NCBI GenBank assembly: GCA_965202585.1
Contig: OZ241832.1
Span: 48,670,001 to 48,734,000, forward strand
DNA length: 64,000 nt
Reading direction: 5' to 3'
From: Thalia democratica
Lineage: Eukaryota
Shown in pieces: positions 9,844 to 44,554 of this stretch. How positions within the stretch are numbered: the stretch's first letter is position 1; every line of letters begins with the position of its first letter. The notes under the pieces were generated by a model. It made no database searches. It was not told the origin of the DNA and saw only the letters and a list, made by a program, of their open reading frames with translations. The position numbers were made by a program, and so were the translations under genes.

Positions 9844-11957
9844 TTAAAAAATCTGTAAACAGCTGAAAGCAGCCAATGCGAGCATAACCAATACTTTGAA
9901 ACTCTTTAACTCGGAACCCGCGGCGCTGAAAAATTTGGTACAGTGGGTGCCGTTGCCCTGGTAACCCTCCGAGCACTCGCACAGGTGGGCCTGCTCGGTG
10001 CTGTACTTGACGCAGGTGGCGTCGTCGTGGCAAAACTGCCCCTGGGCCTCGCAAGCCTGGTTGCCCACGCATGAATTGGGCAAGCGGCAGTTGACGGTCC
10101 TTGTCAATGAGTCCTGACAGACGGCTCCTTCGCACGTTCGCATGTCCTCCCTCTTTCCCACCCCGCACTCGCCCTTGCACTCTCCCAAGACCCAGTCGCT
10201 GTAGTCGGGGTTGGCTGAAATTAAATTTAGTTTTTAAATCATTGTCGAAAGAATTTATATAAGGCAAGTTATGTGAGGCTAAATCTAAAATAATCATTTT
10301 AGATAGAGATTCAATTTGAAAAGGATTTTTTATTTAAATACTGACGAGGTTTTTGACCGAAACTAAGTTTGTATAATAAAGTCTTAAAAGAATATAAATA
10401 TAATGCTTTTACTTTAAGTATTTAAACTAAAAAAGCATTAACAAATTAAAATTCTAAGGTTTGAAACCTGTAAATTTAGTGTATTTGTAACGAAAAAAGT
10501 AATACCTATAAGTTATTAATATACTGTACCATTAATATATATAAAAACTGTTAAACACACTGTCTTATATTATTCAAACAAAATACATGTTTCAATTAAA
10601 TAAAGTTTTAGTCAAGTTACTTATATTCTCACTTATTCATAACCAGATAAAACTTCTAACCTACAACTTAATTTTTGAAAGTTATTTGTACCGGAGTTTA
10701 TATGAACTTAAAAAAAAAATTTAAGAGTCAAATAAACTAATCAAAGTATCAAAACCACTTTAAACATATTTCAAATGTGCTCAAAAATTTTTATCATGGA
10801 GAAACATTTAGAACTTTTTAATAAAAAAAATACAAACATTCGTCGTCATACAGCAGCTGGCACTCCTTCCCGTCTCCAGCGTACTCCGGCAGGCACTTGC
10901 ACTCGTAATCGCCACCCAGGTCGCCGGGCAGGCATACGGCGTTCGGCGAGCACTTCAAGTCCCTGCACACGTCCTCGAAGTTCGGGCAAGCCGGCATCGT
11001 GCACTTGGACACCCGGTTCAGCACCACATCCGGTTCGTCGCAGTACGTTTCCAGCACGCACGTCCTCCTGTCCAGCCGCGTCCCCTCGCCGCAACTGACG
11101 CTGCAGTCGCCCGTGACCCACTCGCCGTACCGCATCGTGTCCTTGATCCACCCGACGTACCACGACACCCGCGCGTACACCTCCGGATGCACGAAGCTGT
11201 CGCAGTCGGCCTTAACCCAGCTGGTCACCCCCCTGAGCACAGTCTCGTTCCTGGCGTTGTCGAAGCACGCCAAGGGGCCGCCCGAGTCGCCTTTGCACAC
11301 GGTGATGTACGAGGAGGGCTTGAAGGCGCACACCTGCAGGTCCGTGTGTATTGCAGGTCCCCAAATCTTCTTGCACCTCGTCTCCCCGTAGATGTTCGTC
11401 TCCGCCTTCTGTAGCACTTCCGGGTCTTCCCTCTCGTCCGTTCCGATCTTCGTGTCGCCGAACCCGGCGATGTCGCAAAACTCGTAATCGAAAACCCTGT
11501 CTCTCTTGCTCCTCGGGAGAGCAATTGGCCTCGCTATCTTGTAGAAGAACAAGCTGGTCTTCAGCTTCACCAAGGCGATATCGTTGGGCAGGAAAACGCT
11601 AGTGATCTTCTTATCCTCGGTGTATCCCGGATGCACGAACTTTGCCACGGCGCCCACCCGCTGCTGGTACTTGAGCTTTTGCTGGTCGAGGAAGCCCACG
11701 TGCGCCCAGGTGTTCTTTGGCTCGTGATGCTGGACGCAGTGCGCCGCCGTCAGGATCCAGTGGTGGGCGAGGATGTTGCCGCCGCACCTCTCCGACCCGA
11801 AAAAGAGTATACCGCCCGGAATCACCATCGACATCAACGCATAATAGGGGAATTCCCCAGTCTTGGCATCCGACCCGCTGATGACCCGGTCCCGGATTGG
11901 CTCGCTGGTTGTGGCGGCGGTGAAGGTTAAGATTAAAATACAGAACAACTTGATCAT
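9844..11957 (-). CDS. S1A (trypsin-fold) serine protease with signal peptide, TSP1-EGF-TSP1-EGF and a C-terminal GPI-signal-like tail, 496 aa. Exons 11957-10838 and 10214-9844
   Basis: Catalytic motifs LTAAHC, NDIALVKL and GDSGGP are present, with activation site R|VISG and the four canonical intradomain Cys pairs. Two W..G.C...CG.G.R...R.C TSP1 repeats and two 6-Cys EGF repeats follow. A phase-1 GT-AG intron joins the exons in frame, and the protein ends in a hydrophobic tail. Confidence 0.93.
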
Positions 11958-38500: not shown

Positions 38501-39202
38501 TAATTCGAGTTTAATCTTAGCCTGTAGACATATTCTCAATAACCATAGTTTTATGCGTTTGATATACAAAAAAAGTTAACTTTTGCAAATTGTAATTTAT
38601 AATGTGAAAAAAAAAACTATGGTCTAAATGTAAGTGACATTTTGTTATGATTTTATTTCAATGAAACATTAAAAAAAATTATTTTAAACAAATAGCAGTG
38701 TCAACTTTTAAGAGTATGTAATATGTATACATTTAAGGGAGCTTTTTTTTCTAAAATATTCTATAAAAAAGCTTTATAAAGATTGTAATAAATAGAAATG
38801 TTTTTTCAATACTTTAGAAAAGCTTTTTATATTTAAATAAAGTTTAGAATATTTATCCCATTTAGTTACATTGCAATTAATATTTTTTTTTTAGTTTTTT
38901 TTACTACATACTTGGATAGAATAAGTATACAAATGTTTTAGATTATAAAATATTTAGAAATACCATAACAAAGATATCAAACATGTTCCAATATACTTTG
39001 TTTTATTCGATATTACAATATTTTTTGAAATAGTGGAACAGCGTCAGTGAGAAAAATATAAATCGATTTTAAATTTTAGTAACTAATTCATACTATCAAA
39101 TAAGCATGAAATTAAGCAAAACATTTTTTAGTTAATGCAAAAATAAAACTTCTGTAAAACAAGTGAAGCAGTTAAAAAGCAAAGAATCGAACAACCAACA
39201 AA

Positions 39203-39997
39203 CTACGAAAGATCCTTCTCCACCAAATTAGCCTCCAAGTAGTGCGTATCGCCATAGCACTTGCAGTGCACGTGACCGTCCTTGTTGATCTTCAGCCACG
39301 TCACGCTGCACGGTTTCATGTCGAACCTGTTCCACGCCTCCAGCGGCAGCTGCATCAGCAAGCAGAAGAGGAAGGCTATGACGTTCTTGTGCGCGAACAA
39401 AATGCGAAGCTCGTCCGTACCGTCGCACAACGCCTCCGACCTGTGAAACTCGCTTTTGGCGAACGAAACCAGCTTCATCCCGTTCCTCAGGTACTCCTCG
39501 TTGTTTTCCAGCACGTGGAACACGTCCTTGTTGTTCGGCGAAAACTCGTACGGAACGCACTTGTTCAAGAACGCGCTGGCAACCCCGCCGCACTGCAGCC
39601 CTTTCAGCCTGCTCAGCACGGAGTCTTTGGTGCCGGAAGAAAAAACGTCTTCGGCGTGCAAGATCTTGCTTATTTTCAGCTTCTCTTTGCCGACTACTCT
39701 CGCGACGTAATCCCCGCACTGCTCAGCTCTTTTGACACCGGCCGGAGACAGGCAGTTGCTGGCTGAAGCTGCTTCGGAGTTATCGGCATCCGCCACCAGA
39801 AGGTAGTGTTTTGTACCGGCGCCGTTGTTGTTGAAGTCGTACTTGCCGTCCCAGTTCCAATTCCACTGGTCATACGCAGTGTAGCCGACGTTGCTGGTCG
39901 CAAAGCAAGTCTTAGTTCTTTCGTCGAAACAAAGTTTTTTGATAGCCAAAGGAAGCAAAACACTGCTGCATCCAGTTAATACTCTTGTAAACTTCAT
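39203..39997 (-). CDS. PGAM5: PGAM5-like protein, predicted catalytically dead (paralog 1), 264 aa, intronless
   Basis: Retains WNWNWD (WDxNWD-type motif), L.P.G...AE..G.Y, FAHKNVI and LQLP.EAW.RF...PCSVTWL.I..DG.V.C.C.GD. The RH motif reads LVADA instead of LIRHG. Confidence 0.85.
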   Translation of the reverse strand: MKFTRVLTGCSSVLLPLAIKKLCFDERTKTCFATSNVGYTAYDQWNWNWDGKYDFNNNGAGTKHYLLVADADNSEAASASNCLSPAGVKRAEQCGDYVARVVGKEKLKISKILHAEDVFSSGTKDSVLSRLKGLQCGGVASAFLNKCVPYEFSPNNKDVFHVLENNEEYLRNGMKLVSFAKSEFHRSEALCDGTDELRILFAHKNVIAFLFCLLMQLPLEAWNRFDMKPCSVTWLKINKDGHVHCKCYGDTHYLEANLVEKDLS

Positions 39998-40539
39998 TCT
40001 TTATTCACTAGCCCTTAGGAAGTCTAGAATATTATCTAGATGAGTAAACCTGAAATAACGACATGTATTTTTTATTAGGCAAGCATATTGTAATCACAGG
40101 AACTACTAAAAGATCAAAAAAAAACTATATTTTGATTACTTACTGTTTTACATAAGCACGTTAGAACTAAATAAACCATTTAAGAAATATTCGCTTACAA
40201 AACTTCCAAATTATTTTTTTTATACTGATAAAGATATATATGAAATTTGTCTGTAATAAGTTGATAAAATTTAAAATAAAAGTAAACAACAAGTCAAATT
40301 AGGAGAAAATAAAAACCTGTTTTAAATCAAATTTTAAAACTCAATTAAAATCAAATTTTTTATAAAAATTAATCAGTGGAAAGCAGAATTGATTGCCTAC
40401 TTGAATGTTTGCTGTAATAGTATTGAAAAATAAAGATAGTCAAAAGATTGAAATAATTTTATAAGTTGATTTTATAACGTGAAAGAAAACAAAACAAATC
40501 AGTATGATATGCATTAAAGTTAGCGTATATGTTTATCAC

Positions 40540-41340
40540 TTATAACACATTGTCCATGGTTTTCATTTGGCTTGGAAAGTATCCGACATCGTCAAAACAT
40601 TTACAAGTGACATACCCATCCTTATCTACTCTTAACCACGTGATGCCGCAATGATAGTGTGCAAAATTAAACCAAGCGGCACAGGGTAGTTGAAGTAAGT
40701 GAAGCAATAAATAACGATTAACAGTGGCATGAGCAAACACTAAATGCAACCTTTCTTCATTATGATCAGGTCGTTTAAATATTTGTGAAGCAGCGTGATT
40801 CAAACGTCTTCTAGAATTTATCATAACCATTTTTTTTCTCCTAGTAAATTCTTTAGCAGCTCCGCCACTTCTGTCAAGTACTCTGCTTGTGATATAAGGT
40901 TCACACTCATTCAGGCCACTGAAAGCTTCTATTCCATATTCGCTTAATGGAACACCATTAGGATCTCGTAAATGGTTTTGAAGTTGTACAAACGCAAGTT
41001 GAGCAGTTTGTACTGCTCTGTGGACATTTGATGAAACTACCGAAGTTAGCCTCAAGTCAGGGTTACGAGCAAGAAAATTATTTAGATATTTACCCACTTC
41101 TGTTGCTTGTTCCATACCTTTATCACTTAATTTATTTGGTCTTTCGTTCATATGGTACTCACCGTGACGAATTAAAAAGTAGTTATTTGCTCCAGAAAAA
41201 CCACGAAGATGGTTTTTACCATCCCAGTTACTATTCCATTCCGCAAAACAAAGTTTGTTTTTAAATGATGAACAAGCAGAATAAAGTACAACTGCTTTAG
41301 CTGAAAGAAGGTAAGTCCATGTCTTAGAAAAACATTTCAT
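40540..41340 (-). CDS. PGAM5: PGAM5-like histidine phosphatase (paralog 2), 266 aa from the ATG at 41340, intronless
   Basis: WNSNWD, LIRHGEY, HRAVQTA, LNEC, FAHATVNRY, LQLP.AAW and GITW motifs. The start was chosen by alignment with paralog 3. Confidence 0.92.
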   Translation of the reverse strand: MKCFSKTWTYLLSAKAVVLYSACSSFKNKLCFAEWNSNWDGKNHLRGFSGANNYFLIRHGEYHMNERPNKLSDKGMEQATEVGKYLNNFLARNPDLRLTSVVSSNVHRAVQTAQLAFVQLQNHLRDPNGVPLSEYGIEAFSGLNECEPYITSRVLDRSGGAAKEFTRRKKMVMINSRRRLNHAASQIFKRPDHNEERLHLVFAHATVNRYLLLHLLQLPCAAWFNFAHYHCGITWLRVDKDGYVTCKCFDDVGYFPSQMKTMDNVL

Positions 41341-41705
41341 TTTAAAAACTCTGTTTTGGTAAGTACTTAAGCTAAACAAAAGTTACCACTAATTTAATTA
41401 AAACACTAATAATTTATGTGAGACACAAAGTCTATTTTTAATTAATAAATTACAAACATTTTTATACTGGCAGTTTTGACAGATAGTTACTAAAACGATC
41501 TAAAACTAATTATATAACTAATAGCTTGCTGTAAAAGCTTGAAAAATGTCAAGAAAGTTTGCTAAAAGACTAAAACCTTATTTTACATACAAATAAAAAA
41601 GATCGAAAATCTTTGTGCTTAAGCTTTTGTTAGGTAAGATCTGACAAAACAAATCAGCACAATACATATTAAGGTATACACACACACATATATATGTTTG
41701 TCTAA

Positions 41706-42491
41706 TTATTTTATATTGCATTGGGTTTTCAAACTTAATTTTAAATGTCCGGCATCACTAAAACATTTACAAGTAACATACCCATCCTTATCTACTCTTA
41801 TCCACGTGATACCGCAATGATAGTGTTCAAAATTATTCCAAGCAGCACAGGGTAGTTGAAGTAAGTGAAGCAACAAATAACGATTAACGTTAGCATGAGC
41901 AAACACTATTTGTAGTCTTTCTTCGTTATGATCAGGTCGTTTGAATATTTGTGAAGCAGCGTTATCCAAGCACCTTTTACTAACTACCATGTTCGTTTTT
42001 TTCTTATTTAATTTTTCAGCATTCTTAAGTATATCCGGTGAAATGTAAGGAGTACACTCATTCAGACCATTAAAAGCTTGTATTTTGTAATCATTCGCTA
42101 AAACACCATTTGGATCTTGTAAATGGTTCTTAAATTGTACAAACGCAAACTGAGCAGTTTGTACTGCTCTGTGGACATTTGATGATATTACTGAAGTTAG
42201 CCTTAAGTCAGGGTTACGAGCAAGAAAAGTATTTAGGTACTTACCCACTTCTGTTGCTTGTTCCATACCTGTTTTACTTAGTGCCTGTGGTCTTTTATCT
42301 GTATGGTACTGACCGTGACGAATTAAAAAGTAGTTATTTGCTCCAGAAAAGCCACGAAGATGGTCTCTACTATCCCAGTTATTTTGCCATTCAGCAAAAC
42401 AAAGTTTGTTTTTAAATGATGAACAAGCAGAATAAAGTACAACTGCTTTAGCTGAAAGGAGGTAAGTCCATGTCTTAGAAAAACCACTCAT
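41706..42491 (-). CDS. PGAM5: PGAM5-like histidine phosphatase (paralog 3), 261 aa, intronless
   Basis: WQNNWD, LIRHGQY, HRAVQTA, LNEC and FAHANVNRY motifs. Close paralog of 40540-41340. Confidence 0.92.
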   Translation of the reverse strand: MSGFSKTWTYLLSAKAVVLYSACSSFKNKLCFAEWQNNWDSRDHLRGFSGANNYFLIRHGQYHTDKRPQALSKTGMEQATEVGKYLNTFLARNPDLRLTSVISSNVHRAVQTAQFAFVQFKNHLQDPNGVLANDYKIQAFNGLNECTPYISPDILKNAEKLNKKKTNMVVSKRCLDNAASQIFKRPDHNEERLQIVFAHANVNRYLLLHLLQLPCAAWNNFEHYHCGITWIRVDKDGYVTCKCFSDAGHLKLSLKTQCNIK

Positions 42492-44554
42492 TTTAATTCT
42501 AATTCTGTATTAGAAAAATTTTTTACTGTTCTTAAATGCTAGAAAATTCAAATAAGAAACTATACAAATACAATGAATTTAACGTTAGCTAAAGACAGGA
42601 GTTTTTAACTAAAACATGAACAAAACGAAAAACTATTATACATAAATTCTATTAGATAACACAGCTCTAGAGTATAAAAAGTTAAAAAAAACTACATATA
42701 AAAACTTAAACTTTAAATATAAATTAAGTAAAACATTAAATAAGTATTGGAAACAAATAAACTTTTACAATAATTGTTGGATTGAAAAAAAAAGACTAAA
42801 TAAGTAACATAATGTTTGCACTATGGTCTTGGGCTTGACTTTAAACTGTTCTGGTGTATGACTTGATAACCAAAAAATTTTTTGTACACCAGGTCCTTGA
42901 ACCAAATTTTTTGAGCATATTTTTTTCTTTTACAATAAATAATATACTATAAATAACCGTTTCTGATTTTGATATATGCTATGAAATGTATATTTATAGT
43001 CTGTTTATGTATATATTTAAAAAAATATTTAGAAAAAGTCTTAGTTGCAAATCTACTGTAAAAACTAACAAAACAACAAAAAGCTATTTAGCATCTACAA
43101 GGACAAAAGTTCAAAGTAGATACTGAAACTAAAAAAGATTTTGAAAAATATATATATCACATAACTACCAAACTACACATGAGAAAACATAAGATCACAA
43201 ACTACAACTTAGAATAGGAAATATTATGCAGAACCAAATCCAAACAGTACCATACTTATATAAACTCCCCAACCTTGAAAATTAAAGATACAATAAATTA
43301 ATTTAAAATATTTTTGAACAAAAGAAAGGTAAACCCTTGTTTACACAACTAAATCTTATTTAACCTAGTTTTTACTAAGCTACAAGATGCTTCTTACAGA
43401 TTTTAAAAACTGAAATGATTTTTGAGATATAGCCAGTCCAATGTTGGAGGCAACAATAGGTTCCTTACGGGAGGCGCAAACTAAAACACAAAATTAGATT
43501 ATTTCACTAAAAAAAGTTCTTTGTAAACCAGGTCCTAGGACCAAAAACTCTAAGCACCTTTTTTGTTGTTGTTTAATAAACTATATTACATTAAATATCC
43601 TATTAATATACAAAATAAATACCACGTTCCCTAAATTTTAAAGGTAATTAGTAAAGATATGAAATTAATAGTATTTTAAAGTTCTTTTTTTAAAGTTAAA
43701 TGATGCATGTAGAAGAGTTTCTTTTCAAAATTTTGTAATTTTAGACTGACATGCTTAAGTTTAGACTAAAATTTTTATAACCCTTGATAGTCGGTAACCA
43801 AATGGAATTATGACTTGATGAAATTATGGAGCCTATTAGTTTAGTTGCAAATGCATAGCCTTATAATAGGTGATTTTAGTTATTTTTTCAATTTATTTTA
43901 ATATATATGGCCTCTAAAAAATATTATCAAAATCTGAGTGTTCTGAACTTGAATTGTTATTCTACCACTACAGACATTATAAACATACTAATTTTAAAGT
44001 GCTAGGCTACAAAAATCGAATACTTATTTAGAACAAAGTTTGTATATTCATCTTAAATTTACACAAATATTCTCAAAACTATTTTAGAAATCCATAAATT
44101 TCCTATCACTTGTAATGACAAGTCCTGAGATTATGCCAATAATGTATAGATTTCAATAGAGTTAAGATTACAAAAACTAAATTCTTATTTAGAATAAATT
44201 TACAGTAAAACAGTCTTGGTCTTGTCAGAAAGTAAACTGATTATAATTTTTTTTAGAACCACATAGATTTTTAAGCATTTGTAGTGACAAATCCAGAATT
44301 TTGCCAATATTACCTTATTTTTTTTTAATTAGGCTACAAAATTTAACTTTTATTTGAAAGATATACATTATTTAATAATGTACTTTAAAGACCAGATTTT
44401 TGTTTTTCAAATTATTCATAACCTTGAAACATTTAAACTCATAAAAAATTATACTTTGCAAATATTATCAAAAAATCTGATTTAGCTTCATTTGACTGCC
44501 TGAAGCATATGAACCTCTAGTGAGCTTATCATAGATAAATAAGTAATGAATTAA

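Follow-up and report, generated by a model that had tools for sequence, protein, structure and literature searches.

What becomes of a phosphatase paralogue that has lost its catalytic residues while remaining beside its active relatives? This question is raised by three head-to-tail PGAM5-like genes of the tunicate Thalia democratica, which lie on the minus strand at positions 39203-42491 of a 64,000-nucleotide stretch of DNA (GenBank assembly GCA_965202585.1, contig OZ241832.1, positions 48,670,001 to 48,734,000), here called the window. The genome is ~800 Mb in size and very AT-rich, and the window lies on a 67-Mb chromosome. In order of transcription, the genes are designated P3, P2, and P1. 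An earlier, sequence-only reading of the locus had described a tandem trio of intronless paralogues in which two active-type phosphatases are paired with a pseudophosphatase, P1, and had proposed that P1 is a maintained dominant-negative or allosteric subunit of the active copies. Our analysis indicates that P1 is, by its sequence, a pseudophosphatase: a phosphatase fold with the essential catalytic residues replaced, expressed and kept by selection. It probably works as a nonenzymatic partner or scaffold.

P1 lacks the PGAM5 catalytic residues and retains the assembly elements

The three open reading frames (ORFs) all match the Pfam family His_Phos_1 (PF00300). Identity is 75% between P2 and P3 and ~31% between either of them and P1. 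Because RNA contigs align over the genes without any joint, all three are intronless, in agreement with the first description. P2 was taken to start at the ATG at 41340 (266 amino acids), with an acceptor/poly(A) junction only 10 nt ahead of it at 41351; this corrects a TTG-extended ORF of 279 amino acids (TTG at 41379). Two further ORFs within P1 (39242-39766 on the plus strand and 39228-39719 on the minus strand) were set aside as by-products of its GC richness.

A search of PDB sequences with P1 returned only human PGAM5 (E value of 2.5e-14, across the whole domain) and Plasmodium PGM2 (E value of 3e-12). P3 matched the same two proteins, with P. falciparum PGM2 (3EOZ) the best (E value of 4e-24, full domain). 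Among solved proteins, the nearest relatives are thus of the PGAM5 type and not dPGM, TIGAR, STS, or others. The structure of P1 was modeled with AlphaFold2 (predicted local distance difference test score [pLDDT] of 74; predicted template modeling score of 0.75), and the model was used as a Foldseek query. The top 20 matches were all human PGAM5 (E value of 1e-16; target template modeling scores of 0.80 to 0.88) and included the H105A dodecamer 6CNL.

In human PGAM5, H105, R152, and H230 coordinate phosphate, and the H105A mutant is inactive yet forms dodecamers and clusters mitochondria (PMC6355839). Inspection of the ORFs and a MAFFT alignment showed that P2 and P3 have all four members of the catalytic set (RHG, the second Arg in HRAVQT, the Glu in LNEC, and the second His), as the sequence-only reading had it, and by sequence both are catalytically competent PGAM5-like phosphatases. 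In P1, RHG is replaced by ADA and LNEC by LNKC, again as first read. The second Arg had been reported as changed to Phe. Its loss was confirmed in both alignments used; the substitute is F when P1 is aligned with human PGAM5 using HMMER and S when it is aligned with P2 and P3 using MAFFT. Since the second His alone remains of the catalytic set, P1 is a family member by descent and fold and is predicted not to be an active phosphatase. We infer that P1 no longer hydrolyzes phosphate and still folds as a PGAM5 domain with both of the devices used for assembly.

The first of these devices is the WDPNWD motif of PGAM5, which binds grooves at subunit interfaces and orders the beta3-alpha3 loop in trans, thereby activating the ring; the second is the C-terminal helix, strand, and tail, which serve as the dimer interface (PMC5501728). 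The motif is kept in the form WxxNWD, as WNWNWD in P1, WNSNWD in P2, and WQNNWD in P3, all of which lack the first Asp of the human sequence. The C-terminal interface (the alpha4 LQFP helix, the beta6 strand, and the tail) is present in P1, for which the sequence-only reading had noted a kept C-terminal fold, and P1 and P3 have the strand motif V.CKC and the LQLP helix in common. Across 22 aligned family members the invariant residues are the initiator Met, W45 and W49 (both Trp of the motif), P149, Q216, and P218, the last two within the dimer interface; the catalytic residues are not among them. Within the P1 clade, invariance reaches 90% in the motif region, 84% in the beta3-alpha3 loop, and 84% in the C-terminal core. 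The corresponding value for the loop in the P2/P3 clade, where it is the most variable part of the protein, is 16%.

P1 is intact in its relatives and under purifying selection

In a word-indexed search, three intact P1 orthologues were identified, with identities of 95, 82, and 75%; their DNA comes from plankton metatranscriptome contigs of ~1 kb. When 1.84 billion representatives were scanned exhaustively with HMMER, a single P1-type cluster at 50% identity was found, and the next match was 32% identical; the P1 cluster at 90% identity or more has 15 members. All 18 P1-type sequences, variants and orthologues together, are intact and carry ADA, LNKC, and the second His, and the second Arg is lost throughout.

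The ratio of nonsynonymous to synonymous substitution (dN/dS), calculated by the Nei-Gojobori method, was 0.09 to 0.18 for P1 (pair estimates include 0.086 and 0.163) versus 0.34 to 0.58 for pairs of the P2/P3 type. In a maximum-likelihood tree, the P1 clade is sister to the P2/P3 clade (support, 85/76), with a P1 stem of 2.57 substitutions per site and P1 tips of 0.02 to 0.16. The history of P1 is one of a burst of change followed by constraint, and in most comparisons purifying selection has acted more strongly on P1 than on P2 and P3. The proposal that P1 is a maintained gene gains strong support from these values and from its transcription, described below.

P3, P2, and P1 form a spliced-leader operon

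Transcript evidence came from contigs of marine metatranscriptomes and of oligo-dT RNA sequencing (runs X1 and X2), placed on positions 39000-42700. These RNA contigs cover P3, P2, and P1 colinearly. At 42506 and 40051, contigs run beyond the genomic match in loose letters whose reverse complement reads ...ATTCTATTTGAATA, continuing into the genomic AG, and this end sequence is the 16-nt ascidian spliced leader of PMC1488885. P1 is transcribed, receives the leader at 40051, and is polyadenylated. The same arrangement is seen in relatives: the cDNA of a P1 orthologue (L022) opens with the tail of the spliced leader, ATAAG, followed by the same 5' untranslated region (UTR), and two P3-type orthologue cDNAs (L024 and L027) open with the 16-nt leader. 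The ascidian-type leader and the plankton metatranscriptome origin of the related sequences point to a pelagic tunicate.

The upstream poly(A) sites sit exactly on the acceptor AG of the next gene, and on this basis P3, P2, and P1, in that order, are one spliced-leader-resolved operon of the Ciona type, without intercistronic DNA. Operons of this kind in Ciona "entirely lack intercistronic sequences" (PMC1488885). P2 orthologue contigs from plankton metatranscriptomes (L025 and L026) extend unbroken for 45 to 54 nt upstream through the site equivalent to the acceptor, as expected of a polycistronic precursor. In the RNA runs, no contig extended over two coding regions, the one three-gene contig (L040) being from a DNA metagenome, and no cDNA record was found for P2 itself or for the "c" gene of the C5 cluster described below.

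The layout of the locus is conserved in L040, a 4.9-kb Tara metagenome contig of a close relative with ~5% noncoding divergence from the window, in which the order P3-P2-P1, the spacing, the acceptors, and the AATAAA signals are all preserved. P3 and P1 are intact in this contig. P2 (L040:2097-2882) is split into three ORF pieces by frameshifting deletions of 2 bp and 1 bp and also has an in-frame deletion of 12 bp; this was seen in one contig only, and no second record of the frameshifts was found. The P1 copy of the L040 lineage, which a metatranscriptome contains as well (L041), has 10 unique changes, compared with 3 in the window copy, a difference that was not significant in a relative-rate test.

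Genome-wide, 358 copies of the spliced leader followed by GT were counted, versus 0 copies of the reversed control. Such sites were found on all large contigs, with a regular array of ~15-kb period on C26, and many of them likely represent spliced-leader RNA genes or retro-copies.

P1 as a candidate subunit of mixed PGAM5-like assemblies

In order to assess hetero-assembly, the P3-P1 pair (residues 30 to 261 and 38 to 264, respectively) was submitted to two-chain structure prediction. The pair scored 0.88 and the best of three controls 0.00; among solved complexes 51 of 78 attain that mark, and among mismatched pairs 2 of 108 do. The runs agreed in at least 84% of contacts, the pLDDT of the partner was at least 81, and the predicted interface consists of the C-terminal strand and helix (residues 215 to 228 and 242 to 253). 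Since a like complex has already been solved, the model suggests that P1 retains an interface of the PGAM5 type, not that it prefers P3 over itself. The earlier suggestion that P1 co-assembles with the active copies gains only indirect support, from the common operon, the invariant assembly motif and dimer residues, and a heterodimer model that passes its controls, and the last of these can be explained by the solved homodimer.

We consider it an even chance that P1 is a noncatalytic subunit co-assembling with its active operon mates. P1 arose in the same tandem lineage as P2 and P3. Its burst of change eliminated the residues that bind phosphate and supply the nucleophile (RHG to ADA, loss of the Arg, and Glu to Lys), and purifying selection has since held the protein nearly constant. 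Under the subunit model, P1 would most likely act through assembly, by means of its N-terminal WxxNWD motif and its C-terminal helix/strand dimer interface; it would bind P3, P2, or both, or take a place in the rings that they form, tuning activity, stability, or targeting. Co-transcription in the operon would keep the three partners together, and the change to G/C-ending codons, specific to P1 among the three genes, may let it yield more protein than its operon mates. A broader version of this model is unlikely in our estimation: that in salp-type tunicates PGAM5 has become a modular mixed-ring family in which operon-encoded dead subunits are obligate for regulation or targeting and in which the wholesale synonymous recoding of P1 inside a single transcription unit (from a third-position GC content [GC3] of 0.29 to one of 0.74 to 0.84) sets the stoichiometry post-transcriptionally.

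Several observations weigh against the subunit model. The P3-P1 prediction may do no more than reproduce the known homodimer structure of PGAM5, and heterodimers and homodimers are alike to it. The tandem P3-P2-P1 arrangement could be duplication history alone. Co-transcription does not guarantee co-expression, because genes in operons of the Ciona type can be expressed independently, a precursor giving either the upstream or the downstream mRNA (PMC1488885). The P2 acceptor was deduced from the poly(A) junction and orthologue cDNAs; it is unseen in the contigs because assemblers break in the 5' region common to P2 and P3. The comparison of the window with L040, the only one made between the same pair of genomes, gave a dN/dS of 0.43 for P1 and 0.35 for P3 on few changes, so that the contrast in selection between P1 and the active-type copies is real on average and not uniform. 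Finally, the N-terminal hydrophobic stretch comprises ~14 residues (maximum Kyte-Doolittle value over 15 residues, 1.3 to 1.6) and is 7 residues shorter in one orthologue (P0002), which leaves a mitochondrial or membrane anchor uncertain.

The closest rival, which we regard as possible if rather doubtful, is that P1 is an autonomous, homo-oligomeric scaffold or adaptor that acts independently of phosphatase activity, much as PGAM5 rings have roles that need no catalysis, its place in the operon reflecting tandem duplication only. PGAM5 H105A still makes rings and clusters mitochondria (PMC6355839), and P1 has features of an independent and perhaps abundant protein: it is more conserved than P2 and P3 in most comparisons and follows its own codon regime. 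The apparent loss of P2 from L040, where P1 is intact, points the same way. Conversely, the V.CKC strand motif and LQLP helix common to P1 and P3, the P3-P1 model that passes its controls, and the operon order conserved in L040 argue for a link to the active copies, and the 10 versus 3 unique P1 changes in the lineage with the broken P2 are a weak, nonsignificant hint of coupling. Quite improbable, in our judgment, is a new catalytic or small-ligand-binding function in the remodeled pocket (D70, D72, K146, and H203). Such a function would account for the invariance of ADAD, LNKC, and FAHK across orthologues down to 75% identity, for the strong conservation of the loop over the pocket, rated the best-conserved part of P1, and for a long stem branch followed by strict conservation, as fits a gain of function. 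Against it, all known histidine-phosphatase chemistry depends on both the RH nucleophile and the Arg cage (PMC6355839), the pocket goes from basic to acidic or neutral, and no resemblance to another enzyme family was found, the top Foldseek matches being all PGAM5.

The absence of catalytic residues and a GC content sharply unlike that of its neighbors might also suggest that P1 is a decaying or functionless duplicate or that the GC-rich sequence is foreign or an artifact. This we hold to be barely credible. Decay was ruled out by an ORF intact in the 18 variants and orthologues, a dN/dS of 0.09 to 0.18, and an mRNA with both spliced leader and poly(A). A foreign or horizontal origin was ruled out by a GC excess limited to third positions, with GC1 and GC2 as in P2 and P3 and with AT-rich UTRs; by the GC3 of only 0.29 in the most distant orthologue; and by the sister position of P1 to P2/P3 in the tree.

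Third-position recoding of P1

The unbroken 264-codon ORF of P1 had been described as strongly GC biased in its codons, and this was confirmed: GC3 is 0.74 in P1 versus 0.25 to 0.26 in P2 and P3. The excess affects third positions only and sits in the interior of the coding sequence, GC3 being 0.35 over the first 20 codons and up to 0.9 in the middle. P1 orthologues have GC3 values of 0.84, 0.70, and, for the most distant, 0.29; genes of the P2/P3 type show no shift in any relative (GC3 of 0.18 to 0.28). Between P1 and the 75% identical orthologue (L023:16-834), the proportion of synonymous differences is 0.9, which lies above the random expectation, i.e., the synonymous sites are more than saturated. 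This is a consequence of the directional replacement of A/T by G/C at third positions (GC3 of 0.29 to 0.74).

Two actin-family genes (C7:49743731-49744957 [L028] and C5:15158867-15159787 [L029]) have GC3 values of 0.74 and 0.92 in loci whose background GC is ~0.35. Because of these values, some highly expressed genes may favor G/C-ending codons, although the sample is small. Biased gene conversion centered on the coding sequence is a possible alternative cause of the recoding. Histone H3 genes (L034-L039) have GC3 values of 0.31 to 0.50. Elsewhere in the window, positions 10818-11957 (minus strand) hold an intronless 379-amino-acid ORF whose product is a trypsin-like protease carrying TSP1 and EGF modules. 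At 58% GC, the kilobase around this ORF is the richest in GC of the whole window; it is another GC-rich single-exon gene in an AT-rich genome.

PGAM5-like genes elsewhere in the genome

A genome-wide search with P3 gave 17 matches, from which 15 intronless paralogues could be read. The nucleophile site has His in 8 or 9 of these and the full RHG in 6; the others have ADA, RDA, KTA, SQI, GPG, or RNA. Counted by sequence, PGAM5-like paralogues number 15 or more in this genome, the active site is degenerate in about half of them, and dead-type paralogues have orthologues in relatives (P0014 and P0017). The view of the trio as a special arrangement therefore proved too narrow, since active and dead types occur together in further tandem clusters. 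One of them comprises four genes on C5 (Table 1), each with a pyrimidine-rich cAG 15 to 25 nt ahead of its ATG, and for this reason may be a second operon mixing active and dead copies. In the other PGAM5-like clusters, too, every gene has a pyrimidine-rich cAG 10 to 25 nt before the ATG.

Long regular tandem arrays were also observed for the histone H3 genes, with periods of ~7.2 to 9.9 kb and dozens of identical-scoring copies (C7:14.67-14.91 Mb, C8:46.19-46.31 Mb, C8:54.37-54.45 Mb, and C10:25.64-25.96 Mb).

Table 1. Coordinates of the P3-P2-P1 locus (window positions) and of other tandem PGAM5-like genes (contig positions)
Feature	Position	Strand	Details
Spliced-leader acceptor (cAG) of P3	42505..42507	-	13 nt upstream of ATG; X1 and X2 contigs continue into the leader at 42506
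P3, active-type PGAM5-like gene	41706..42491	-	261 amino acids; RHG, HRAVQT, LNEC, and FAH kept; motif WQNNWD; RNA contigs cover the gene; GC3 0.25
P3 3' UTR	41351..41705	-	Non-templated poly(A) from 41351/41350 (loose 20-T run, X1 and X2), on cAG 41353-41351 before the P2 ATG
P2, active-type PGAM5-like gene	40540..41340	-	266 amino acids from ATG at 41340; RNA contig over 40050-41029; motif WNSNWD
P2 3' UTR	40051..40539	-	AATAAA 40071-40076; poly(A) at 40051/40050 (loose 19-T run), on the P1 acceptor AG
Spliced-leader acceptor (cAG) of P1	40050..40052	-	Leader joined at 40051 in X1 and X2
P1, PGAM5-like gene, catalytically dead by sequence	39203..39997	-	264 amino acids; GC3 0.74
WNWNWD, P1 counterpart of the PGAM5 WDxNWD multimerization motif	39848..39865	-	Read in sequence
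ADA replacing the RHG nucleophile motif, P1	39785..39793	-	Invariant in 18/18 P1-type sequences
LNKC, Lys replacing the conserved Glu of LNEC, P1	39557..39568	-	Start of beta3-alpha3 loop; read in sequence
Second His of P1, as AH	39389..39394	-	Kept
P1 3' UTR	38986..39202	-	AATAAA 39002-39007; mRNA contig ends at ~38986 (X2, 14 nt past 39000); no further gene after
Tandem cluster of four intronless PGAM5-like genes (L004-L006, L008)	C5:20286707-20291525	One strand	RHG, KTA, RDA, RHG; GC3 0.47, 0.30, 0.59, 0.79
Tandem PGAM5-like pair (L013)	C8:65048805-65050900		SHG and SQI; SQI copy with long GKDSH-type repeat insert
Tandem PGAM5-like pair (L011, L012)	C5:47090978-47092991		RHG and NHG

Comparison with known systems

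PGAM5 is activated by ring assembly, and research on mitochondrial quality control and on cell death is still asking how that assembly is tuned. Human PGAM5 (PDB 3MXO, 5MUF, and 6CNI/6CNL) has the fold of the tunicate proteins and is the best match of P1 in both sequence and structure. It resembles them in the WxxNWD motif N-terminal to the domain, in the LQxP helix and C-terminal dimer strand, and, for P2 and P3, in the catalytic residues. Unlike human PGAM5, P1 is without counterparts of R104/H105, R152, and the Glu, and identity is only ~25%; in addition, the N-terminal hydrophobic segment is short, with an uncertain membrane anchor, and the tunicate genes have no introns, share an operon, and form part of a family with 15 members or more. 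The engineered H105A mutant (PDB 6CNL; PMC6355839) offers a parallel, a dead site with assembly retained, and by its sequence P1 looks like a natural counterpart of it. P1 differs in that it has lost several pocket residues and is a separate gene fixed by selection, known from sequence and models. Among solved structures, P3 is matched best by the PGM2 protein of Plasmodium falciparum (PDB 3EOZ), which is PGAM5-like and belongs to the same branch; it is an active-type protist enzyme and a much weaker match for P1 (E value of 3e-12).

A literature search for a natural PGAM5-type pseudophosphatase, or for PGAM5 in tunicates, returned nothing relevant. What is new here is an operon mixing active and dead PGAM5-like copies, together with data on selection. 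As a natural, strongly conserved, apparently dead PGAM5-like protein that is probably co-transcribed with active ones, P1 provides a ready test of whether dead subunits set the activity or specificity of the ring.

The operon itself is closest to the spliced-leader operons of Ciona intestinalis (PMC1488885), with which it has in common the 16-nt leader, upstream poly(A) on the downstream acceptor AG, and, in relatives of the source species, precursor-like cDNAs. It differs in having three cistrons that are all paralogues of one family, long 3' UTRs (355 and 490 nt), and an approximately threefold difference in GC3 among the cistrons. Three paralogous cistrons in a single transcription unit with such a GC3 gap make a clean case in which to separate codon selection from regional mutation or conversion bias in tunicates.

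Pairing of active and inactive phosphatases is established for the myotubularins, which form heteromers such as MTMR2-MTMR13 and MTMR6-MTMR9, and other pseudophosphatases, such as STYX, are known. The myotubularin heteromers are alike in concept to the arrangement proposed here, in which a paralogue that is dead yet conserved joins an active phosphatase and regulates it. The myotubularins and STYX, unlike P1, belong to the Cys-based protein tyrosine phosphatase fold superfamily and are not known to be encoded in operons. If P1 does co-assemble with its operon mates, the principle of active and dead partners known from the myotubularins would extend to the histidine phosphatase superfamily.

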